From sequence record NC_061443.1: a DNA stretch of 64,000 nt. The stretch is one strand, 5' to 3'. The position numbers and the translations under genes were made by a program. Positions 1-30,483 of the stretch are shown in pieces (the first letter of the stretch is position 1; each line of letters starts with the position of its first letter). The notes under the pieces were generated by a model. That model was not told the origin of the DNA. It made no database searches and saw nothing but the letters and a program-made list of their open reading frames with translations.

Positions 1-1506
1 ATGGAAATGTTTTCGCTTGGCCTGGAAGTTCGGGCCATTCGAACTATCACGAACCCAAAGATTAAGGAAGGTTACAGGACGGCCATGATGGGTCGTCTTG
101 CAACAGGCCACTTTAGTTCGGAAGTAACTCGCAAGTCATTCCGCCGCATCACGAAGCTGGTGGAATCACGAAGCGAAATAATTGATTGGGAAGACTTGCT
201 GGAAGACCCGAACTTGACCGAAGAGTTCAGGGATAGTCTGCGGGAAGCAGAAGAAAAGCCAGCAAAGACCATGAAGGGCTTTGACAAGATATTCGACAGT
301 CTGGAGAAGTACCGTCAGCGTCGTGATATCATGAACCTCGGTAAGCAGATTGCTAAAGACTTTAGCGATGCAGACCCAGAGGAGTTCGACGAGCAGACGT
401 ACATGCAAGAGCTGGCGGATAAGCTGGGTCAAGCGCAGCGTGGCACCCGTAAGACTGAGAAGGTTTGGTCATTCGGTGGCAAGAAGTCGAACGCCATGAA
501 GTTAGCGAAGCAGGTAATCACTAACCCGAAAGAGGTGATGTACAAAACTGGCTTCAAGACGTATGACAATAAGAACGGCGGTTGGCCTACGACTGGCGTT
601 GTGTTGTTAGCAGGTTCAACGTCTGGTGGTAAGTCTGTTATCTCAATGAACCTCGCTGATGCAATGGCGAAAGTAAACGGCATTCACTGTCTCAAGGTCA
701 CACTCGAAATGACCGCCGAGCAGGAAATGAAGCGTATGCTCTCGATGATCAGCGGCATCGACTTCTGGAAGATCAAGCAAGGTAAATTGTCGAAACGCGA
801 GCAGACGCAGTTGCTGAAAGCCGCGAAGCAGTACGACAAGATTATGAAGAAGGCGAAGGGGCGTAACTCATTCACGTCTCCTGAACGTGGCATGTCGATT
901 GATGACGTTCTGTGTATGTCGATCCCGTATGGCGTCCACGTAACCTTCATCGACTACGTTGGTCTGTTAGAAGGTATCGACAACGACAACCAGTGGCGCG
1001 AACTGTCTACGATTGTTCGTAAAGCGAAAGTACATGCGAACGCAACAGGCCAGCTTGTTGTTATCCTGTGTCAGCTTGATGACCAGACTGGTCGTATTCG
1101 TTACTCTGGTGGTATGCGCGAACACGCCGACGTTGTGTGGGCATGGAACTACTCTGACCCTGAGATCCGTGAAGGCAAAGTGATTCCTGTTCAGGTAATG
1201 AAAGCGCGTGATGGTGAGTTGTTCGAAATGGCGTTGGAAGATGCGTTCGAGACAATGACCGTGCGTGATGCTGGCGCTGATGCTGAAATACCGAAGTCAG
1301 GTAAAGTTATCTCAACTGACGATATGGAAGGTAAGGGAGATTCCAAGAAGAAATTCGGGAAAGGTAATTTCAAGAAGAAGGATAAAATTGAGATTAAGAA
1401 GTCGCGTCGTGGTGCTGCTGCATTCCTTGATGCGGGTAATAGCGATGACGATGACGGCGACCTACCGAAGAAAAAGAAAAAGCGTAAGTCTTATGACGTA
1501 GCTTAG
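1..1506 (+). CDS. dnaB: DnaB-like replicative helicase (may begin upstream of window)
   Basis: Walker A GSTSGGKS, TLEM motif, FIDYVGLL (Walker B), ILCQL, KARDG arginine finger; Lys/Asp-rich C-terminal tail. Confidence 0.9.
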   Translation: MEMFSLGLEVRAIRTITNPKIKEGYRTAMMGRLATGHFSSEVTRKSFRRITKLVESRSEIIDWEDLLEDPNLTEEFRDSLREAEEKPAKTMKGFDKIFDSLEKYRQRRDIMNLGKQIAKDFSDADPEEFDEQTYMQELADKLGQAQRGTRKTEKVWSFGGKKSNAMKLAKQVITNPKEVMYKTGFKTYDNKNGGWPTTGVVLLAGSTSGGKSVISMNLADAMAKVNGIHCLKVTLEMTAEQEMKRMLSMISGIDFWKIKQGKLSKREQTQLLKAAKQYDKIMKKAKGRNSFTSPERGMSIDDVLCMSIPYGVHVTFIDYVGLLEGIDNDNQWRELSTIVRKAKVHANATGQLVVILCQLDDQTGRIRYSGGMREHADVVWAWNYSDPEIREGKVIPVQVMKARDGELFEMALEDAFETMTVRDAGADAEIPKSGKVISTDDMEGKGDSKKKFGKGNFKKKDKIEIKKSRRGAAAFLDAGNSDDDDGDLPKKKKKRKSYDVA

Positions 1507-1514
1507 GAGTCTCT

Positions 1515-1757
1515 ATGGATGAAATCCAGTGGCTAGTCTTCGATGACGAAGCCAACCTAAACATAGACAAGGATTATGTCTATCACGTTCGCACCAAGGA
1601 GGGTGCAGAGCATTCTGGTATGTACCCTAACGGAGCTGGCTTTCACTGTCAGAACCCAGGACAGCCTGGTCGTGTAGCAATGTCCGACGTAACGCATTAT
1701 GCTGTGCAGATGACATTCGATGACCATGCAGATAAGTTCGTATTCGGCCGTGAGTAA
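1515..1757 (+). CDS. hypothetical protein
   Basis: 80-aa ORF with AGGAG RBS, directly after helicase. Confidence 0.6.
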   Translation: MDEIQWLVFDDEANLNIDKDYVYHVRTKEGAEHSGMYPNGAGFHCQNPGQPGRVAMSDVTHYAVQMTFDDHADKFVFGRE

Positions 1758-2541
1758 CTTCGAAGGGCCGTACGGACTCGTCGAGTCTGACCAGATGATC
1801 CCACGCTGGTCGTACCCTGTTAAGCATGGACAGGTACGTAGAGTCGAAGCGTGGGAACTCGATACCTTGCCGAACGCAACGCAGCAAGTGCGAATGGTAA
1901 ATGACATTCACGCAATTCATAACACACCTGTAGAGGATTATGATGACGCACTCGATCTCGATGAAGAAGCCGCAACGATCTCAAAAACTGAGTCCCGACT
2001 TCTTATCAAGCCTCGACTCGATGAAGTCCGTGCCCGTAAAAACAAAGACCACCTTAGTCCAGAGAACGTCTTCTCCGTCACCGACGAAGTAATTGATGGT
2101 GCTCTGGATAGCATTGATGCTTACTCTGAAACGTTCCGTGATTACCTAATGCACCATGTGTTCAGCCCTATACTCGGGTTTGACATTGCAGCAGGTGAGG
2201 TCGAAGCAATCGCCAAAGACTGTCTCAAGACGGACTTAGAGATTGACAGCGAGCTTGTGCCGTATATCGAGCGCGTAGGGCTTGCTAACGTTCTCGGCGT
2301 AATGCTATCGAAGTCTAACTCTGTGCCTGAATCAGTACGCGCTGACGTGCTGAAAGACTGGCTGATTAAAGCGTTCGATGATGTACGCGCAGAGCATAAG
2401 CTGAAAGGTAACAGCTTGCGTGAACAAATACGCAGACTAATGCACGGTAACAATGATCTCGTAGCTAAAGGACCTGGTATAGGTACGACGCGCGGGTTCT
2501 CTGATTATAGGAAACAGATGACCGAGAATGGCCAAGCCTAA
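1750..2541 (+). CDS. hypothetical protein, possible terminase small subunit by position
   Basis: helical ORF overlapping the start of the large terminase; start (GTG 1750 or ATG 1795) uncertain; function from synteny only. Confidence 0.4.
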   Translation: MSNFEGPYGLVESDQMIPRWSYPVKHGQVRRVEAWELDTLPNATQQVRMVNDIHAIHNTPVEDYDDALDLDEEAATISKTESRLLIKPRLDEVRARKNKDHLSPENVFSVTDEVIDGALDSIDAYSETFRDYLMHHVFSPILGFDIAAGEVEAIAKDCLKTDLEIDSELVPYIERVGLANVLGVMLSKSNSVPESVRADVLKDWLIKAFDDVRAEHKLKGNSLREQIRRLMHGNNDLVAKGPGIGTTRGFSDYRKQMTENGQA

Positions 2542-5362
2542 GAAGGGCCCAGCTTTTACCTTGCGTCCAAAACGCATTGCAGCATTCGATGCGCTGCTTG
2601 GCGATGACGTAAAGGTAGAGGCTTCTTCTGACATGGACTTCTTGTCGGATAATAGTTCGAGTGCGATTAACTTCTTGGAGAAGGGCGAGGTAAACATCGT
2701 TGACTTGGTTGAAGGTGCGTTAGAACAACGTACCATCGTACCACGCGATTTGAAGTTCGATGACAGTTCAATGCCCAAGGCGAAAAACTTCCTTGAGTGG
2801 TGTACGAGTCCCGACTTCTTAAAAGCCGAGCCGTATCTTGAACAGGCCTTGATTGGTCTACGCTTGTTTGGAGAGATCTGCGTTCGCTGCTCTCCTGATT
2901 TGCAATGGCAGTACACTGAAAACCACGAGCCGCAAGAGACTACAGCCGCAATCGAGGAGCATCTGCACTTGTTGCATAACGGTGTGTGTCCTCATTGCGG
3001 CGCTCGTCGTTCTGAGATGATTCGCAAGAAAGAGATGAACTTCTATAACGAGCTGGCAGTGAATGCCGGACAGCGTTGTGTGATTGCTTCAACTCCTGTC
3101 GCCACTTCTCGCGGTATCATGCCTATCGGTCATATGATGATAGGTCACGACACTCCTGGATTCCACAAGCCTCGTCGCAATTTCAATGCGCACAATGGTC
3201 GTGAGATCAAGAAGGTCAGTCAGGTGTACGTGTCGGACGAAAGCCCTACGAAAGTAGTGATGCTCGCAAACGGCATTTGGGTAGAAGCCACTGACGAGCA
3301 CCCGATTCGTACCGAACACGGATTCAAGAAAGCTGCCAAGATTCGTCCTGGTGATAGAATTGAAATTCGTCTTGGTACTAACACGTGGGGCAAGATTCAA
3401 CGTCCTGTCAGTATCTACGATGCAGGTCTGTCTACACGCGAAGATGCGTTGCGCTACATCTCTGATCGCTCTCTGCCTTTTGGCGAGAAGATGCAGCAAT
3501 ACGTGTCTAACGATGACGACGCTCTGCAAATGGTCTGGTCTATTTTGCTTAACGCAGGCTATATGCCTAGTGTGCTGCACGGACCTGGCGATAAGAGCAT
3601 CCTGTTCGACCTGACAAAAGAGCCAGAAGTGCGCTCGGCTCACATTGAAGTAACTGACGTCCGACCAGGTACGCCGCAAGTAACGTATGACCTCCAGATG
3701 GAAGGTCTGCCTCAGTTTGTGGCTAGTGGTATGATACACCACAACAGCGGTAAGTCCGTTGTAGTTGCGATGATATCTACCTATCTGACGCACAGGCTGC
3801 TTATGTCGCAGTCGCCTACTGGCATCCTGAGTATCGACAACACAACCGTACTACACGGCACGTTCGTTGCGCTCACCCAGAAGCAAGCGTCTGATACACT
3901 CTGGACACCTTACTTCAACTACATCATGGGTAGTCCTTGGTTCCAAGCATATCATGATTTGATTCGCAGACACGAGCGCCGCTACGGCATCGAAGTGATG
4001 AAGATTCGTGATACGTTCGTGCTGTATGGGCACAGGAACTTTGTTATCTACCCAGCAGGTCCCGATGGTCGTATTCTTCGTGGACGAACACGCGTACTGG
4101 CGGTGATCGATGAAGTGGCGTATTTCGACAACGACGCCCAATCCAAAAAGATCAAAGTCAGTGCTGGTGCTGTGTACGGAGCGCTCGACCGTTCACTTGC
4201 GACCGTGCGGGCGAAAGAACGAAGGCAGGTGGAGGCCGGCTACGACGAGGCATTCACGGGTTACTTCTGCAACATCAGTAGCCCGGTACACGCTCGTGAT
4301 AAGATTAACGAGCTGTTGCGTATGTCCGTCGGTAGTGAGAAGCTGTTAGGCATTCATGCTCCTACGTGGAAGATGAACCCTGACATGCCACGCGATTCAG
4401 AGTTCCTGTTAGAAGCGTTCAAGCGTGACCCTGTAGGTGCAGCGCGAGATTATGGCGCAGAGGCACCGTTGTCTGCTAACCCATTCATCACGCAGCCTAC
4501 ATTTATCGCAGATGCTATTCGTGAGAAGGGTCGTTCGATGTGTACCTATACGCATCACATCATTCGACACAAAGACGGCGAGCGCCAGCGCTATGGTGCT
4601 TTAGTCAAAGCGGCAACGACAACCAAAGCGTCTATCCTTGCGATTGATGCTGGCTTCTCGAATAACAGTTTTGCACTCGTAACAGGCTCACGAGGCGATG
4701 ACGGTATTATCAGTGTTGACTGTCTGGTGGAGATTGTTCCAAAGCCAGGTATCCCTCTGAACTATACCTTAATCTTCGATGAACTGCTTATCCCGCTATG
4801 TAAGGCCCGTAACGTTCGTGTAATGCTTGCCGACCAGTGGCAATCGCTCAAGTTGCTGCAAGATGCTAAACTGAAAGTGGACTCGATTGAAGAATCAGAT
4901 CAGTACAGCCTGAAATATCAGGATATGTGGACTGTGAAGACGATGTTCGAATCTACTCCAAGCCGCATCACACTGCCTCGCATGACGAACGCGAAGACGA
5001 TTATGGACACGCTGAAATACGACGGCGACGAATATCCTCAGTGCTTCGAGAACAAACCAACAGAGCACTTGATCATGCAGCTCCAGACCGTACAGGACAC
5101 TGGACGTAGCGTCATCAAGAACACAGGCGCAACAGATGACCTGTGGCGAGCAATGGCACTCATGGTCTATGGCTTCGAGTGTGGTGAGTATGACGAGTAT
5201 CTGATTAAAGCGCCAGAAGTATCAATCAACCGTGACCCGAATCGTTTAGGCCGCGTAGCGCATAGACTTAACTCAGGCTCAGCCAGTTCAACAGGCAGAC
5301 CTGCACTTAGTGGTGGCCGTGTTCTTGGTTCAGCACGTACTCGGATGATTGGCCGGAAGTAA
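2528..5362 (+). CDS. terL: terminase large subunit (intein-containing)
   Basis: after splicing Walker A GQR-SGKS; LRGRT and VIDEVAYF Walker B; NISSP; nuclease LAIDAG; N-terminal CxxC...CPHC. Confidence 0.92.
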   Translation: MAKPKKGPAFTLRPKRIAAFDALLGDDVKVEASSDMDFLSDNSSSAINFLEKGEVNIVDLVEGALEQRTIVPRDLKFDDSSMPKAKNFLEWCTSPDFLKAEPYLEQALIGLRLFGEICVRCSPDLQWQYTENHEPQETTAAIEEHLHLLHNGVCPHCGARRSEMIRKKEMNFYNELAVNAGQRCVIASTPVATSRGIMPIGHMMIGHDTPGFHKPRRNFNAHNGREIKKVSQVYVSDESPTKVVMLANGIWVEATDEHPIRTEHGFKKAAKIRPGDRIEIRLGTNTWGKIQRPVSIYDAGLSTREDALRYISDRSLPFGEKMQQYVSNDDDALQMVWSILLNAGYMPSVLHGPGDKSILFDLTKEPEVRSAHIEVTDVRPGTPQVTYDLQMEGLPQFVASGMIHHNSGKSVVVAMISTYLTHRLLMSQSPTGILSIDNTTVLHGTFVALTQKQASDTLWTPYFNYIMGSPWFQAYHDLIRRHERRYGIEVMKIRDTFVLYGHRNFVIYPAGPDGRILRGRTRVLAVIDEVAYFDNDAQSKKIKVSAGAVYGALDRSLATVRAKERRQVEAGYDEAFTGYFCNISSPVHARDKINELLRMSVGSEKLLGIHAPTWKMNPDMPRDSEFLLEAFKRDPVGAARDYGAEAPLSANPFITQPTFIADAIREKGRSMCTYTHHIIRHKDGERQRYGALVKAATTTKASILAIDAGFSNNSFALVTGSRGDDGIISVDCLVEIVPKPGIPLNYTLIFDELLIPLCKARNVRVMLADQWQSLKLLQDAKLKVDSIEESDQYSLKYQDMWTVKTMFESTPSRITLPRMTNAKTIMDTLKYDGDEYPQCFENKPTEHLIMQLQTVQDTGRSVIKNTGATDDLWRAMALMVYGFECGEYDEYLIKAPEVSINRDPNRLGRVAHRLNSGSASSTGRPALSGGRVLGSARTRMIGRK
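3077..3745 (+). mobile_element. intein (223 aa, reduced endonuclease region) in TerL Walker A
   Basis: starts CVIASTPV, block B ATDEHPI, ends YDLQM...IHHN followed by Ser. Confidence 0.9.
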
Positions 5363-7888: not shown

Positions 7889-8274
7889 GTGGATTGTTCC
7901 CGCATCGCGTTATCACGCAGAAAGAAGGTTTCGTGTTTATCGTTCAACCTGCGGACGACACTGACCCCGAAGCTGTAGAAGCGGCTCAAGATATTGAAGC
8001 GCTTCTGGTTGAAGCGTGGCCTACTGCACCGTCTGAGCTGTCTGTCAATGACGTGCGTGACCCAGAAGAAGCCGAACTGGTGTTCGCTGATATCATGCAA
8101 CTGCTGGAAGAAGCAGAGCGCGAAGAAGCACATCAGATCGTAATCAGTGGTATCGTTGTTGTCGGCGAACTGGCCGTCGTAACCTGTATGCTGACCGGCG
8201 AAGATCTGGAAAGCGACGATGAAGAAGACGAAGACAATGATTCCGTTGAAGTTGACGAAGAAGAATTCGATTAA
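7885..8274 (+). CDS. acidic hypothetical protein
   Basis: AGGAG RBS, GTG start; D/E-rich C-terminal tail. Confidence 0.7.
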   Translation: MSGLFPHRVITQKEGFVFIVQPADDTDPEAVEAAQDIEALLVEAWPTAPSELSVNDVRDPEEAELVFADIMQLLEEAEREEAHQIVISGIVVVGELAVVTCMLTGEDLESDDEEDEDNDSVEVDEEEFD

Positions 8275-19039: not shown

Positions 19040-19427
19040 AGCATCTGACGCGGAAGCACGGGCGTACTTTCAGAAACAACACGAACGTGCCGAAGCCACT
19101 ATGCGAGAAATTTGGGCGTTGCGTGGCTGGACGATTCGCTGGGAATGGCACAACGGAATCTGCGATGACTGTGAGTTCCTGTTCGATGAAACAGGCAAAC
19201 AGTTGTGCCCTTATCACGATGCCATTCCTCAAGAACGTGATGTATCGTACAACCTTGAGAAGTATCGCCTCAATGTAACGTACACCAAGAAATCTGTAAA
19301 ATTGATTAACAAGCAAGATCCCAATCCAGTTGAAGGTAAAGCCGACACGTTACGTCAGGCATATCTCAATTGGTTACTTGCGATTGAAAAGCAGAAAGCT
19401 GAGGAGAAAACGTGCGCTGCGACCTGA
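19017..19427 (+). CDS. possible second ABA-sandwich-like protein
   Basis: CAGGAG RBS; LEKYRLNV...EGKADTLRQAYL parallels preceding gene. Confidence 0.45.
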   Translation: MYLPLGDKASDAEARAYFQKQHERAEATMREIWALRGWTIRWEWHNGICDDCEFLFDETGKQLCPYHDAIPQERDVSYNLEKYRLNVTYTKKSVKLINKQDPNPVEGKADTLRQAYLNWLLAIEKQKAEEKTCAAT

Positions 19428-19933
19428 AAGACCTTCCACTGGCATTAGATCAAGCTGAACACATCCTGGCGAGCGTGTTCACTCTGGCTGCTTCCTCCAA
19501 GTCTAAGCGTCGTGCGACTGCTGCGATGTTGGTGCATTTCCACAATGGCTTCCCGATGATTCTGAGTAGTGGTGTCAACGGGACAACGCCTGGCGAAAGC
19601 AATGTGATGGAAACTCCTGACTTGACGCTTTCGCTGGACACTGTGATTCATGCAGAAGTGAATTGCTTGGACCGTCTCGAAGACTACTCACTCTGGGCAG
19701 ACTTCCGTGACGTCCTGTTCTGTACAGATTCACCGTGCCCCAACTGTCTGACCGAGCTTACTACTGCTGGCGTGAAGACCGTTGTGTATGCGCGTGAGTA
19801 TCGCCTGACTGATCATCTGGACGCATCTGATATCAAGATGTTCTGTCTGGACATGAAGTCGGTTGAGCATCGTATGCTTCGCGGCATCGAGCGTATGAAC
19901 GAAGTTATCGCAACAACGCCAGCGTCTGAATAA
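19412..19933 (+). CDS. dCMP deaminase
   Basis: SSGVNGTTPG, HAE, SPCPNC zinc motif, VVYAREY. Confidence 0.88.
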   Translation: MRCDLKDLPLALDQAEHILASVFTLAASSKSKRRATAAMLVHFHNGFPMILSSGVNGTTPGESNVMETPDLTLSLDTVIHAEVNCLDRLEDYSLWADFRDVLFCTDSPCPNCLTELTTAGVKTVVYAREYRLTDHLDASDIKMFCLDMKSVEHRMLRGIERMNEVIATTPASE

Positions 19934-20632: not shown

Positions 20633-21115
20633 GTGGATAACTTTCTGATTGACTTGAAGAACAACTTCGCTCGTGCTCTCGGCATTGACCCAAAGCTACT
20701 GGAACAATCGTCTGAACCTCAGGACACTGAGATCTTCGAAGCGATGATTAAAGAAGACCAACGCCGCGTCATTGTCGGCTTGGCCCTGTGTCACCTGCAA
20801 GTGCCTGACGATATTCGTTATGACCTGCTGCACAATCATCTGGACACGACTGAACGCTGTGTACGTGAAGCATTCGAAGAACTCGCAGCCCGCCTGGTAG
20901 TAGTCAGTGGTGCCACTGGCGGTAGTGAGAAACAAGCCGCGTCAGGAGCTGTTCGTCTTGGCCTGTTGATGAACATTCTTGGCTTCGACAACGAAACACT
21001 GAAAGGTGTACTTACCGACCCAAGCCTTTCTCGTCAGGCTGGTCTTATCGCTATGACTGGCCTGAACGATATGGGTCAGAAAATCCAACAACTGTATGAC
21101 GAGAAATCAAAATGA
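20633..21115 (+). CDS. hypothetical protein
   Basis: AAGGA RBS, helical. Confidence 0.6.
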   Translation: MDNFLIDLKNNFARALGIDPKLLEQSSEPQDTEIFEAMIKEDQRRVIVGLALCHLQVPDDIRYDLLHNHLDTTERCVREAFEELAARLVVVSGATGGSEKQAASGAVRLGLLMNILGFDNETLKGVLTDPSLSRQAGLIAMTGLNDMGQKIQQLYDEKSK

Positions 21116-21276
21116 GCAACCCGGACAATCCATTAGCAGATTACTTTAACGCTGACGCAGTTATCCCAGGTGTAGACGACGCAGAAGATCGTGTCGAAGC
21201 TATGCGTGACGGTGGCGGCGAAGTCGTTGACGAAAAAGATGCTGATGGTTGTGAAAGCGGCGCCTGCAAAATCTAA
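21112..21276 (+). CDS. 54-aa acidic peptide ending in an NrdA-type C-terminal redox tail (not in ORF track)
   Basis: MSNPDNPLADYFNADAVIPGVDDAEDRVEAMRDGGGEVVDEKDADGCESGACKI; ATGA overlap with upstream stop; fills the gap exactly. Confidence 0.8.
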   Translation: MSNPDNPLADYFNADAVIPGVDDAEDRVEAMRDGGGEVVDEKDADGCESGACKI

Positions 21277-21305
21277 TTCATGGGGCCTAGTGCCCCATTT
21301 CTGTT

Positions 21306-21857
21306 TTGGGGAAATTTATGCAAACAGCATACCGTTGTAAGCATTGCAAATACGTCCACAACGATAAAGTCAGTAGCTGTGACTGCGGCGGAAGTAAACG
21401 TTTTGAGTATACGTTGGTGCAAATCATCGACGTGCCTGAGAACGAAGAACAAGTCCCTCAGTTTAAAGATCTGCGCCACTCTCGTGACCAGCGTTATGTG
21501 AACGTTAAGAACGGCACGTATGGCAACGGCATCTATGAGCTGCGCGAGATTCGTGGTAATGTTGACGGCGATGAACGCTACTGGTGGACTAATCTGGGTA
21601 ACATGCAGAGCGGTCTGGACCGAAGCGATGTAGGCGCAAAGATTGTTGAAGACAACATGCGGGCGAACTGTGTGTTGGCTGCTGCTGGACCTGTGATGCT
21701 CGAAGCGCTCTATATGTGCTATCAGTATTTCCATCGCAAGCGCTTAGTGCAGGGCGATACGCCTAAGACTGCGCAACGCATTTCTGTCATTGCTGATGCT
21801 ATTCATCAAGGCACTGACCTGTCCGTCTTCAAAGAACCGCAAACACCAAAGGAGTGA
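21306..21857 (+). CDS. hypothetical protein with N-terminal Cys cluster
   Basis: CKHC...CDC. Confidence 0.55.
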   Translation: MGKFMQTAYRCKHCKYVHNDKVSSCDCGGSKRFEYTLVQIIDVPENEEQVPQFKDLRHSRDQRYVNVKNGTYGNGIYELREIRGNVDGDERYWWTNLGNMQSGLDRSDVGAKIVEDNMRANCVLAAAGPVMLEALYMCYQYFHRKRLVQGDTPKTAQRISVIADAIHQGTDLSVFKEPQTPKE

Positions 21858-24284: not shown

Positions 24285-24588
24285 TCTGCTGGTAAAGATG
24301 TTCGGCCAGAACAAGCCGTTCTTTGTAGTACGTCGGGACGCGATTGTTGAAGAAGGAAAGCGTTTCGGTGATCGTGTCTACTTCTCCAACGGCACTAACA
24401 CTGTTACCGTGCCAAACATTCAGGGGCTCGACCTCGGTGATAAGCTCTACATTGCAGAAGACGGCGATGTGTATGAGTGGCATCCTCACTTCGAGCGCCC
24501 GTACGAAGCAGTATCAAACAACCAGTCAGAAGCTCTGGCGTTTGGTCTGCATCCCATTGTTTTTCATACTGACAGTCGGAACAGCTAA
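24244..24588 (+). CDS. hypothetical protein
   Basis: coupled to thymidylate synthase. Confidence 0.5.
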   Translation: MPTPLILLKQQTRDLLVKMFGQNKPFFVVRRDAIVEEGKRFGDRVYFSNGTNTVTVPNIQGLDLGDKLYIAEDGDVYEWHPHFERPYEAVSNNQSEALAFGLHPIVFHTDSRNS

Positions 24589-25685
24589 TGTCACAACCAC
24601 TTGATCTACGCAATCCAAATCACTACGAACTGTACTCTATTCACAACGTGGACGAACAGTACATCAACCTGTGTGACGCTATTATCGCTACAGGCACGAA
24701 AGAGTCTGACCCTGAGCGCACCACCGACGAGTGGTTGACTATCATCGGTGTCGGCTTCCAGTTGCAGAACACGCACATCGCTTTCCCTGCGCTGCTTGGT
24801 GCACGTAAGAACTGGGTAGCGGCTGTCGATGAAATGTGTTGGATGGCTCGCGGTGAAACGAACATCGAATCCCTGAACTCTAAGATCTGGGATTTGTGGG
24901 CAGACGAATCTGGAGACTGCGGTCCTATCTACGGTGAGCAGTGGCGCCGTTGGCCTGACGTCAAAGCCTTCTTCGACTACACGCAGCCTATGGCATCTTG
25001 CCCTACTGCGGAAGTTATTCGTGCGCGTAATGAAATCCTGCGTATGCGTGAAGACGGCTACATCGAAACTGAACTGACTGATGGTCGCATTCTGTTTGAA
25101 GGTCAGATTGACCAGTTCGTTAATGCTCTGTACCAGATTCAGGCTCGCTCCCGTTCGCGCCGCATCCGTGTTCAGGCGTTCAACCCAAGCTATGTGAACA
25201 TGCAGGGTCTGCCTCCATGCCACACTGAGTTTGAGTTCAACGTAACGAAAGCTACTCGCTACGAACAAGCTCAGGCAGAAGCGCGTGGACAAGCTGTTGC
25301 CGAAGACAGCCTGCACATCACTGTCCAACTCCGTTCCAATGATTGTCTACTCGGACGCCCGTTCAACATCATGGGCTACAGCGCCATGCACCAGATGATC
25401 GCTAAGTGGGCGGGTCTAAACGTCGGCGGCTTCACGCTCAACTCTACCAACACGCATATGTATACGCACCACATCGAAGCGTATCAGACGCAACGTGCCC
25501 AGTGGATGACGCTACGCGAGCGTATGCAGAAAACGGGTGAGCCTGTTAAATACCCTGTGCTCGAAATCAGTGACGACATTCTTGGCCTGACGCCAGAGCA
25601 GTTGCTCGATAACGCGAACGCAGATTGGTTCGAGCTGGTGGACTACAATCCAATGCCAGCAGTAAAAGGACGTGTGACCAAATGA
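24588..25685 (+). CDS. thyA: thymidylate synthase (ThyA type)
   Basis: EMCWMARG, IWDLWAD..GDCGPIYGEQWR, SRRI, LPPCH, QLRSND.LLGRPFN, HMYTHH. Confidence 0.93.
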   Translation: MSQPLDLRNPNHYELYSIHNVDEQYINLCDAIIATGTKESDPERTTDEWLTIIGVGFQLQNTHIAFPALLGARKNWVAAVDEMCWMARGETNIESLNSKIWDLWADESGDCGPIYGEQWRRWPDVKAFFDYTQPMASCPTAEVIRARNEILRMREDGYIETELTDGRILFEGQIDQFVNALYQIQARSRSRRIRVQAFNPSYVNMQGLPPCHTEFEFNVTKATRYEQAQAEARGQAVAEDSLHITVQLRSNDCLLGRPFNIMGYSAMHQMIAKWAGLNVGGFTLNSTNTHMYTHHIEAYQTQRAQWMTLRERMQKTGEPVKYPVLEISDDILGLTPEQLLDNANADWFELVDYNPMPAVKGRVTK

Positions 25686-28353: not shown

Positions 28354-30483
28354 ATGATCATCAAGCCGCCTACGATGAAGGAAATCAACAAGCTGGATAA
28401 ACCCTGGCGTGGTATGAGTTTCTTCGCAGGTTGCGGTGGGTCTTCTACCGGCCACAAGATGGCCGGTATCAACATCCTGTTGAGTAACGAGTTCGTGGAC
28501 TCTGCCCGCGAATCCTATGAAGCGAATCACCCAACCACAAAAGTGCTGCCGCATGATATTCGTCGTCTGGACCCAAGCAAGCTCATGCGTTATTGCGGGC
28601 TGGCAAAAGGCGAACTGGATTTACTTGACGGCAGTCCTCCATGCTTTACCGAAGACACCATCATTCATACAGCAGACGGCATGAAGTTCATCTCGGACAT
28701 GAATGTCGGCGATCAAGCAATGACCTCAGTCGGTCGTTACTTCCCTGTGTACGATACAATGGTTCGTCCATACGTCGGCACAATGCACAAAGTCGAAACG
28801 CTGTTGGGCGCAAATAACGCAACGCCTGAGCATCCATTCTTCGTAAGACGTAACACTGCTCCTGGTGAGTACGGCGAACCGTTCTGGTGTGATGCGAAAG
28901 ACGTGCAGGAAGGTGATCTGGTCGGTACTCCACGCACGACTCCTGATATGGGTCTTGCTGTGTACGAAGACCAGCTGGCTCAACTGCCTAAGCAGATCGC
29001 CGAGTGGGTAGTGTTCCCTGAGTTCTGGTGGATGATTGGTCACTGGTGCGACCGTGGTTCGATTGAAACTGTTAGCGGCGTTGAAGTCGTTAGCTTTGAA
29101 TCTCATTCCAGCCTTGAGAACGCAATGATTGAGCAGTCGTTTGACGCGCTTAAAATCAGTAGCCTGAATCGTATCGACACAAAGACAGCACAACGCAAAA
29201 CGTTCCGTATCGTTATGGACGCAGAGCTGGTGCAGTTCTTACGTCGCTTCGTGTCTCAAGGTAACAATCGTTTCTCTCGCCGTCTGCCTGCAATGATCTT
29301 TCACTTGTCGCCTGAGTTGAAGCAACAATTCATCTTAGGCTGCGCTGGTCATGACTACGTGACTGCGATGGGCGCTAGTCTGTCTATCACATCAGAGAGC
29401 CGTCGCTTCCTGATTGAGATGAACTACCTGTGCTGTTCAGCGTTCAACAGACCTCTGTTTGACGGACTGATTTGGGGCGACGTTTACTTCGGTAGCTCCA
29501 TGACTCCTCGTGAGCGCAACAGTGCCAAGCCTCTTATTGGCTATTTGTTCCTGCAGGACGAGCCGCATTACTTCTTCGAGTTCTCTGATACTGATCCTCA
29601 CATCTGGGTTGAAGTAATTGAGAACCTCGCGTATCAGGCAACCTGTGACGTGTACAACTTCTCCGTTGAGACGGACGAGACATACGTTGCAAACAGCGTG
29701 GTCGTTCACAACTGCAAAGGTTTCTCTACTGCTGGTGTGAAGGAAGAAGGCTGGGGCAAAGAGGTGAAGTACAGCGACAACAAGTATCAGCAGGTAGATG
29801 ACCTGTTCGATCAGTATTGTCGTATGCTGGGCGGGATGCAGCCGAAAGTGTTCACTGCGGAAAACGTTAGCGGCCTCGTTAAAGGTGCGTCGAAAGGCTA
29901 CTTCCTTGAAATCATGAAGGAGTTCGACAAGCTGGGCTACTACGTCCGGGCGCCAATGCTTAATGCTGCGTGGCTTGGTGTGCCTCAGTCTCGTGAGCGT
30001 ATCATCTTTATGGGTGTACGCAAAGACGTTGCCCATGCGCTTGGATATAAGACGGCTGCTACTGCTGTGCCTGACGTTGTACCGTGTGACAGCATGGCGT
30101 TTCTTGCCGATGCTCTGCCGAACATCCTGCGTTACAAATCAACGAAGAAAGATATCATCACGTATCTTCCTGCGATGAACGGTCCGATGCCTACGATTAC
30201 TGCCGCCGATGCGATTGCATACGAGACTGCGCGTTTCTCGTCTGCTGGCTTCGTCGAAGATAACAAAGGTCATCGACGCAAGCTGACTATTGATGAACTC
30301 AAAGTTATCTCTGGGCTGCCGTCAGACTACAAACTGAAAGGCAAGTTCGAAGAACAGTGGGAACGTCTTGGTCGTATCTGTGTGCCTGCAATGACACACG
30401 CTGCGGCTAAAGCGTTAATCGAACACGTCCTGATTCCTTATGCGAAGAAGCGTAAGAAGAAGCCTGGCGATATCTTTAAGTAA
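28354..30483 (+). CDS. C5-cytosine methyltransferase homologue, predicted DNA carboxymethyltransferase, intein-containing
   Basis: motif I FFAGCGGSS, motif IV GSPP-C, VI ENVSGL, VIII QSRERI, IX RKLTIDE, motif X WERLGRICVP (Arg for canonical Asn). Confidence 0.85.
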   Translation: MIIKPPTMKEINKLDKPWRGMSFFAGCGGSSTGHKMAGINILLSNEFVDSARESYEANHPTTKVLPHDIRRLDPSKLMRYCGLAKGELDLLDGSPPCFTEDTIIHTADGMKFISDMNVGDQAMTSVGRYFPVYDTMVRPYVGTMHKVETLLGANNATPEHPFFVRRNTAPGEYGEPFWCDAKDVQEGDLVGTPRTTPDMGLAVYEDQLAQLPKQIAEWVVFPEFWWMIGHWCDRGSIETVSGVEVVSFESHSSLENAMIEQSFDALKISSLNRIDTKTAQRKTFRIVMDAELVQFLRRFVSQGNNRFSRRLPAMIFHLSPELKQQFILGCAGHDYVTAMGASLSITSESRRFLIEMNYLCCSAFNRPLFDGLIWGDVYFGSSMTPRERNSAKPLIGYLFLQDEPHYFFEFSDTDPHIWVEVIENLAYQATCDVYNFSVETDETYVANSVVVHNCKGFSTAGVKEEGWGKEVKYSDNKYQQVDDLFDQYCRMLGGMQPKVFTAENVSGLVKGASKGYFLEIMKEFDKLGYYVRAPMLNAAWLGVPQSRERIIFMGVRKDVAHALGYKTAATAVPDVVPCDSMAFLADALPNILRYKSTKKDIITYLPAMNGPMPTITAADAIAYETARFSSAGFVEDNKGHRRKLTIDELKVISGLPSDYKLKGKFEEQWERLGRICVPAMTHAAAKALIEHVLIPYAKKRKKKPGDIFK
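28642..29712 (+). mobile_element. intein (357 aa) with degenerate LAGLIDADG endonuclease
   Basis: starts CFTEDT, block B ATPEHPF, ends VYNFSVETDETYVANSVVVHN followed by Cys; endonuclease helices read MIGHWCDRGS and FILGCAGHD. Confidence 0.92.

Follow-up and report, generated by a model that had tools for sequence, protein, structure and literature searches.

Why should a bacteriophage in which no ribonucleotide reductase (RNR) is detectable carry a small gene whose product ends exactly as the RNR of enterobacteria does? The question is raised by Erwinia phage pEa_SNUABM_2 (MZ443786.1), an Alexandravirus of 265,442 bp with the host Erwinia amylovora, whose positions 1-64000 are matched at 100% identity, and with unchanged coordinates, by the stretch of 64,000 nucleotides analysed here (the window). 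On its + strand, at 21112..21276, lies a small open reading frame (ORF) of 54 amino acids (aa) plus stop, with an ATG start, the translation of which ends ...MRDGGGEVVDEKDADGCESGACKI. The C-terminus of Escherichia coli NrdA (WP_001075170.1) reads ...RDGAEDAQDDLVPSIQDDGCESGACKI. An earlier reading of the window, made from its letters without database searches and referred to here as the original prediction, had pointed to the identity of the last 10 residues and to an RDG kept in both proteins. The fetched NrdA sequence bears this out (BLASTP of the 54-aa peptide, E=6e-6 in a single comparison), the phage linker being 4 residues shorter. The shared decapeptide, DGCESGACKI (21244..21273, + strand), in which Cys47 and Cys52 are spaced as CxxxxC, is identical to the enterobacterial NrdA C-terminus.

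The bottleneck in the supply of DNA precursors is RNR, whose re-reduction by its C-terminal tail is slow and poorly visualised. In class I enzymes it is a dithiol on the tail that reduces the active-site disulfide after turnover and is then re-reduced by thioredoxin or glutaredoxin (PMC9669993, PMC4078304). The two cysteines of class I tails are mostly arranged as CxxC and in a minority, to which E. coli belongs, as CxxxxC (PMC9669993). The ORF in the window proves to be one member of a family of such small modules, and the reading preferred here, at somewhat less than an even chance, is that the module would be a portable mimic of the redox tail of the RNR alpha subunit, acting through the partners of the NrdA tail. 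A copy of the tail occurring naturally as a separate protein, conserved in large phages that lack RNR, would show how these secure or control the host synthesis of deoxynucleoside triphosphates (dNTPs).

The module family

The ORF was missing from the gene track on which the original prediction was based and was therefore described there as unannotated, but the public record does carry it, as the hypothetical protein pEaSNUABM2_00032 / QZE59276.1. It is a real gene under purifying selection. Among five Alexandraviruses the ratio of nonsynonymous to synonymous divergence (dN/dS) is 0.04-0.19, with a value of 0.53 in one pair that has three differences alone. Conservation in relatives, which the original prediction had proposed to look for, is also evident from tblastn of the 54-aa peptide against 50,697 phage records, which matched 69 of them. 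These include all Alexandravirus relatives and, at lower identity, Y3, Yoloswag, Dickeya phage AD1, JA11/13/29/33, Serratia phage PCH45, Klebsiella Miami-like phages, and Erwinia pEa_SNUABM_25/54-type phages; a second tblastn query added Salmonella phage SA002, Proteus phage 10, and Yersinia phages fHe-Yen9-02 and phiR1-37. At the protein level an alignment is needed as query to recover the family, a word-index search with the single peptide returning 2 relatives only. With an alignment, 73 clusters (90% identity) of 41-85 aa were found among 5.8 billion proteins, many of them on 200-300-kb contigs, and a profile search of 1.84 billion representatives found 47 clusters (50% identity) at E <= 1e-3.

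The members, which are found mainly in jumbo phages, are acidic, mostly disordered modules of about 50 aa with a common layout. On the N-terminal side is an acidic F-D motif, and then comes a helix running up to the near-invariant GGGE; beyond this, an acidic linker carries a Cys pair, one further residue, and a terminal Ile. Two alignments, of 11 phages (A1) and of 70 sequences (A2), define these elements. The F-D motif (Phe12 and the next residue, 21145..21150, + strand) has an invariant F12 in A1 and D13 in at least 90%, the pEa_SNUABM_2 ORF having N at this position. The GGGE core (residues 34-37, 21211..21222, + strand) has G35 and G36 invariant, with G34 and E37 in at least 90% of the 70 sequences. 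In the same sequences C47 and C52 are invariant and I54, at the very C-terminus, is present in at least 90%. AlphaFold2 with the 70-sequence alignment gives a mean predicted local distance difference test (pLDDT) score of 63.7 and predicts a helix at residues 21-32 (21172..21207, + strand) as the sole secondary-structure element, with coil elsewhere, including the Cys tail. The window ORF has all the features by which the family is recognised, namely the GGGE with the helix, the terminal Cys pair with Ile, and the F-D motif.

The tail itself varies within these limits. Among 71 members without the exact host-type tail the cysteines are spaced as CxxxxC in 51, CxxC in 14, and CxxxC in 6, and across the family the penultimate residue is K, I, M, E, or A.

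No Pfam or NCBIfam model covers the family. In the PHROGs collection, the 47 positions of phrog_10239 are matched over their full length by the module of one fused member (E=7e-9), and the end of phrog_24014 has a weak match to the window ORF (E=0.024), the window ORF itself being below significance against both. The family has therefore been clustered before, although these two groups carry neither a name, nor a function, nor a link to RNR. No description was found in the literature of a phage RNR-tail mimic or host-RNR modulator of this type. For a family without a Pfam entry, a name, or a literature, a descriptive account alone would be new.

Likeness to the C-terminus of NrdA

The distribution of the exact decapeptide was determined by scanning one genome per bacterial species for back-translated DGCESGACKI followed by a stop, which gave at least 120 loci. 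All of the loci listed have an NrdA-type tail, 116 of them in frames of at least 600 aa or in frames running off the locus, with no resemblance to the phage family in any. The species (at least 120) are essentially all Enterobacterales, with Erwinia sp. AnSW2-5, P6884, V71, and OLFS4 among them, and the bacterial tail is invariant among the loci listed.

The likeness does not depend upon the phages that have the exact tail. On an end-anchored position-specific score built from 51 family members, with the exact-tail subclade excluded, the final 11 residues of NrdA score 31.0 bits out of a maximum of 41.7, with an exact null P=4e-11; such C-termini would be expected by chance 1.7e-7 times per 4,300-protein proteome. 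With this score on a profile lacking the exact tails, the likeness is not one of chance. When 67 rows of the family, none with an exact tail, were compared by hhalign with 47 distinct 60-mers of NrdA, the probability was 95.4% and E=1.8e-8, the match covering solely the last 11 columns of both profiles. When the family profile was searched against 177,635 PDB sequences, E. coli NrdA came third, aligned end to end, with a weak E of 1; phmmer with the single peptide had no match in the PDB, so that NrdA is reached there by the family profile alone, and weakly. Judged by these profiles, the resemblance to NrdA is far beyond chance and is confined to the terminal motif.

What is shared is the family-wide consensus C-E-[SG]-G-[AG]-C-K-I, set in both cases in a flexible, acidic segment (residues ~735-761 in E. 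coli NrdA, with Cys754/Cys759) with CxxxxC two residues from the C-terminus. The module differs from the NrdA tail in that it is never on an RNR barrel, has the GGGE and F-D motifs, and has a tail that varies between phages. Neither the GGGE core nor the N-terminal F-D motif has a counterpart in NrdA, hhalign leaving the GGGE region unaligned.

Two further connections were considered and dropped. The last 36 nt of the ORF are identical to bacterial nrdA ends at 26-33/36 positions, which is uninformative where the peptides are identical, being no more than such peptides would give, and does not point to recent capture from a host nrdA. A likeness of the N-terminal acidic motif to the C-terminal tail of NrdB was unconvincing by eye against the fetched NrdB tail, and tblastn with NrdB gave no match on the ORF.

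RNR and redoxin content

The original prediction stated that no nrdA lies near the ORF, and this holds for the whole 265-kb genome. Searched in six pieces by tblastn with E. coli NrdA, NrdB, and YfaE, the genome gave the 10-residue tail alone, so that the nrdA lacking its tail that had been suggested as a possible partner elsewhere in the genome was not found. A Pfam scan of all pEa_SNUABM_2 ORFs of 520-1000 aa found no RNR family of any class. By these sequence searches, pEa_SNUABM_2 has no detectable RNR of its own.

The 54-aa protein is itself neither an RNR nor a redoxin. It has no Pfam or NCBIfam RNR match and no ten-stranded alpha/beta barrel (Ribonuc_red_lgC/lgN), and with one predicted helix, no Pfam match, and a Cys pair at its disordered C-terminus it does not have a thioredoxin fold. 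At the level of motifs, no 65-160-aa ORF of the phage has a canonical thioredoxin or glutaredoxin active-site context; any redoxin partners would therefore be host proteins.

None of the relatives examined has at the locus of the module the nrdA that would be expected there had the ORF been left behind by a deletion. In pEa_SNUABM_54, 50 kb of which was covered, the sole NrdA-like tblastn match (E=0.001) is a spurious one, falling in an SLT-domain virion protein of 2,181 aa.

Fused domains and neighbouring genes

Proteins of 115-462 aa carry the module as their C-terminus in 17 of the 47 representative clusters. The N-domains to which it is fused fall into at least four unrelated classes, without conserved cysteines and without a Pfam family. 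None of the 47 clusters is an RNR, the module being either free-standing or fused to non-RNR domains of unknown function. The commonest of these N-domains (class A) has an AlphaFold model with a pLDDT of 72, and it has no meaningful match in the PDB or BFVD and nothing in Pfam or PHROGs.

In pEa_SNUABM_2 the module gene follows gene 00031 (20633..21115, + strand), which encodes 160 aa of no known family. The ATG of the module gene overlaps the TGA stop of 00031 in an ATGA (21112..21115, + strand), as the original prediction had described. This overlap, which is kept in SNUABM_22, SNUABM_36, and Alexandra, indicates that 00031 and 00032 would be translationally coupled. Gene 00031 is the syntenic partner of the module gene solely in Alexandra-, Y3-, and SNUABM_25-type phages. 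A link between 00031 and the fused N-domains, of the Rosetta-stone kind, was rejected on hhalign probabilities of <1%. Phages of the pEa_SNUABM_54 lineage encode the module and the upstream protein in separate genes, and in a relative (P0090; E=4e-10) the two are fused.

Genes of nucleotide metabolism are found near the module in several lineages. Those for dCMP deaminase and thymidylate synthase are near it in Alexandra, Y3, Yoloswag, and JA13 types, and thymidine kinase is 3-8 kb away in three other lineages. In the metagenomic P0051 type, where the protein ends DDCESGACKI, a class III RNR (NrdD/NrdG) is 5-7 kb from the module, and the family is therefore not restricted to phages that lack RNR. 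No nucleotide-metabolism genes are present within 3 kb of the module in Miami, PCH45, or SPLA10. The recurrence of such genes is suggestive.

The P0051 contig (~100 kb) has, at 1097-4929 of the piece read, the ATP-cone/NRDD/Gly_radical protein with its radical-SAM activase, a family-A DNA polymerase lying alongside. It is distantly related to the E. coli kuraviruses, which are its nearest isolates and lack the module. BASEL phage Bas88 has no module at the syntenic position, and tblastn with P0051 gave no match, probably owing to low-complexity masking. The P0056 subfamily is on metagenome contigs of up to 581 kb (53 assembly-collection blocks, 24 contigs read), where it occupies 8001-8144 of the contig pieces and starts 1 nt past a MYG1-family gene; acetyltransferase, DoxX, and RND efflux genes are its other neighbours. 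'Stenotrophomonas' phage BUCTxx100 has the gene layout of Klebsiella phage Miami over a 6-kb region and a module that differs by one residue, and its host label looks odd for such a close relative of Miami.

A putative mimic of the host RNR tail

Mimicry of the tail is supported by the likeness holding family-wide once the exact-tail members are removed, by the presence in the family of both Cys spacings of class I RNRs, CxxxxC and CxxC (PMC9669993), and by the prediction that the protein is disordered save for one helix, as expected of a tail. As a mimic, the phage protein would dock on the partners of the NrdA tail, that is on host thioredoxin or glutaredoxin and/or on the NrdA catalytic site, and such docking would tap or modulate the host deoxynucleotide supply in infection. 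The general idea of a mimic or decoy directed at host RNR or at thioredoxin and glutaredoxin, put forward in the original prediction, is thus the one that is best supported, by inference, whichever direction its effect may take.

There are three ways in which such a protein might act. It may boost the host enzyme as an extra, freely diffusing dithiol tail, which is mechanistically plausible because the activity of mouse RNR is raised up to 3-fold by a second route of reduction that acts at the active site beside that of the tail (PMC4078304). It may instead be an adaptor or tag by which phage domains or nucleotide enzymes would be tied to host RNR or redoxins. Finally, it may block, as a competitor of tail-mediated regeneration in the manner of Sml1, which would fit the anatomy equally well. 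In yeast, Sml1 reportedly inhibits the regeneration that the C-terminus of R1 carries out (Zhang et al. 2007 PNAS), a precedent for a separate small protein targeting the tail-regeneration step of a class I RNR. Like Spd1, Hug1, and Dif1, it is a small disordered inhibitor of RNR, as the module is small and disordered. There is no sequence relationship between the two, however, and Sml1 is a cellular, checkpoint-controlled inhibitor without a copy of the tail, while binding of RNR by the module is putative. We lean towards a positive role, as extra tail or adaptor, since a 265-kb phage without an RNR depends on that of its host.

A wider proposal, possible but on the doubtful side, is that jumbo phages lacking RNR carry an 'RNR-tail tag' that would dock the free peptide and fused phage domains onto host RNR or redoxins, and would so capture, accelerate, or gate host dNTP synthesis. 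If this were true, phages would be seen to take over their hosts by a device of a new kind, directed at the supply of electrons to RNR. The module would also serve structural biologists, as a soluble natural probe for the docking of the tail on NrdA and on thioredoxin or glutaredoxin. If, on the other hand, the likeness to the tail is functionally unrelated to RNR, this is one more conserved phage protein of unknown function.

Several observations weigh against mimicry of the host tail. Everything past the likeness in sequence to NrdA is inferred. The GGGE, which is the most conserved element of the module, has no counterpart in NrdA, and the module therefore has a core function that tail mimicry leaves unexplained. 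Its fusion to at least four unrelated N-domains without conserved cysteines is more what would be expected of a docking tag than of a dedicated RNR shuttle. These two points, and the existence of the module family, had escaped the original prediction. The modules of other E. amylovora phages end in ECEGGGCKI, DCDGCKI, and SCDGGGCII, while the bacterial tail is invariant; exact identity with the host tail is thus a trait of the pEa_SNUABM_2 subclade alone. E. amylovora is itself absent from the decapeptide matches listed, the NrdA tails read being those of other Erwinia species. The Pfam scan for RNR covered ORFs of up to 1000 aa, and a class II enzyme might be encoded in a larger one. The P0056 subfamily is in bacterial-looking DNA of 30% G+C, next to the MYG1-family gene. 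Lastly, g117 of phiR1-37 (2977-3132 of the locus read) is a degenerate member in which the EVVEASDECDGGGCKI end is kept and the GGGE is lost, and it is essentially untranscribed, its published RNA sequencing values being 3.9, 1.5, and 1.2 where those of its neighbours run from hundreds to 34,000.

Alternative explanations

The module may serve a phage enzyme and not the host RNR. It would then be a detachable dithiol tail for the product of 00031 or for the fused phage protein, with the redoxin-docking end of NrdA alone being borrowed, so that host thioredoxin or glutaredoxin would feed the phage enzyme. The apparent coupling to 00031 and the synteny in Alexandra-, Y3-, and SNUABM_25-type phages would be accounted for, as would the module being at the C-terminus of a larger protein in the 17 representative clusters, the separate genes in the pEa_SNUABM_54 lineage that are fused in P0090 (E=4e-10), and the copy in a bacterial context directly 3' of a MYG1-family gene. 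However, the partner domains have no relation to one another or to 00031, none is in Pfam, and the best sampled of them has no recognisable fold match. They also have no invariant cysteine for a dithiol shuttle to regenerate, and this explanation is considered unlikely.

Nor need the Cys pair be a redox shuttle at all. It could bind metal, or the protein could be an acidic tag for docking, or a mimic, directed at some unrelated hub of the host, the likeness to NrdA then reflecting the convergent chemistry of a flexible C-terminal Cys loop. Mimicry of nucleic acid, or binding to host hubs, is common among small, very acidic phage proteins. Consistent with this, the best conserved elements, the GGGE and the F-D motif, are those absent from NrdA, the Cys spacing ranges over 2-4 residues with K, I, M, E, or A as the penultimate residue, and the module is attached to diverse domains. 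It is hard, though, to derive from chemistry alone an end-anchored match to one particular host protein with P=4e-11. The family and NrdA share the E that follows the first Cys, the G in the centre, and the terminal K-I, both of the RNR-type spacings are present, and the pEa_SNUABM_2 subclade has moved to full identity with the host tail, all of which would make a non-redox origin of the likeness improbable.

A processed peptide has far less in its favour. Here an acidic, leader-like part ending in Gly-Gly would be cut off and a disulfide-looped C-terminal peptide released, either by maturation like that of ribosomally synthesised and post-translationally modified peptides (RiPPs) or through cleavage after Glu by a phage protease. 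Loosely leader-like features may be seen in the F-D/N-L-D-like motif and in the run of Gly, and the G-G-E and V-V-E sites would resemble motifs at which such proteases cut. Precursors of RiPPs, however, have adjacent maturase or transporter genes, and no maturase, transporter, or protease gene is adjacent to the module in any neighbourhood examined. There is also no signal sequence, the 'core' is without consistent Ser/Thr, the module is fused to large N-domains, and the gene is amid early/metabolic and not head genes, so that processing of this kind would be very improbable. In Pup and ubiquitin-like modifiers the Gly-Gly-(Glu/Gln) is C-terminal, whereas the GGGE of the module is internal, 17 residues from the end here and 11-17 in other members.

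Least credible of all, and rejected for this phage, is the relic of an nrdA at this locus, or a split-off tail serving a tail-less phage RNR in trans, both of which the original prediction had entertained on the 10-residue identity and the RDG: the DNA of the ORF, too, weakly matches the 3' end of nrdA (85% over 34 nt, E=6), but no RNR was detected in the phage for such a tail to serve, the host-type NrdA has its own tail, no nrdA is at the locus in relatives, the family is old and under purifying selection, the similarity stops 11 residues from the end, the identity with bacterial nrdA over the last 36 nt (26-33/36) is no more than identical peptides would give, and there is no full-length RNR with a GGGE module among the 1.84 billion representatives. 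RNRs split into separate polypeptides are known, as in NrdJa/NrdJb and in the nrdA of phage Aeh1, which is split by a homing endonuclease (PMC9669993, PMC6690015). In these cases the remaining pieces are present and adjacent, while in pEa_SNUABM_2 no other RNR piece was detected.

Gene context in pEa_SNUABM_2

The module gene is in a tightly packed, co-directional run of genes, the first recognisable one of which encodes dCMP deaminase (19412..19933, + strand; Pfam dCMP_cyt_deam_1 3e-9; phrog_174 2e-24). A scan identified a terminator-like hairpin, rich in G+C and followed by a T-run, 4 nt past the stop of the ORF (21280..21308, + strand), which is kept in five Alexandraviruses, and no sigma-70-like promoter between 19300 and 22000. 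The ORF therefore closes this run. The thymidylate synthase gene (24588..25685, + strand; Pfam Thymidylat_synt 1.7e-57) is 3.3 kb downstream of the ORF, which sits amid early/metabolic genes, not head genes.

Just past the terminator, the gene at 21318-21857 (+ strand) has a four-Cys, zinc-ribbon-like start and matches phrog_1273, of unknown function. In Yoloswag, too, the module gene is followed by such a gene, the homolog gp35 (39% identity).

Among the five Alexandraviruses, synonymous divergence is 0.03-0.48 in the module ORF, against 0.35-1.29 in the coupled upstream gene. The ORF together with its terminator (21112-21308, compared with 20633-21111) is thus a conserved island. The low synonymous divergence may possibly come from recent exchange of a cassette between phages, or from constraint at the nucleotide level.

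Other observations

Essentially every CDS of pEa_SNUABM_2 is labelled 'hypothetical protein', including those for the dCMP deaminase and thymidylate synthase as well as those for gyrase/topoisomerase subunits, an NAD-dependent DNA ligase, and a RecA-like protein. The same annotation is given to a 709-aa ORF at 28354-30483 (+ strand), which encodes a C-5 cytosine DNA methylase (Pfam 2.6e-38) whose sequence is broken by an intein-like insert (Intein_splicing 1e-6, Hint_2 1.6e-4). A second ORF, of 944 aa at 2528-5362 (+ strand), has a weak match to an intein-splicing domain (E=7e-4, below the Pfam cut-off) and to no other family. Outside the window, at 220094-221671 of MZ443786.1, is a 525-aa radical-SAM / 4Fe-4S protein that is likewise annotated as hypothetical.

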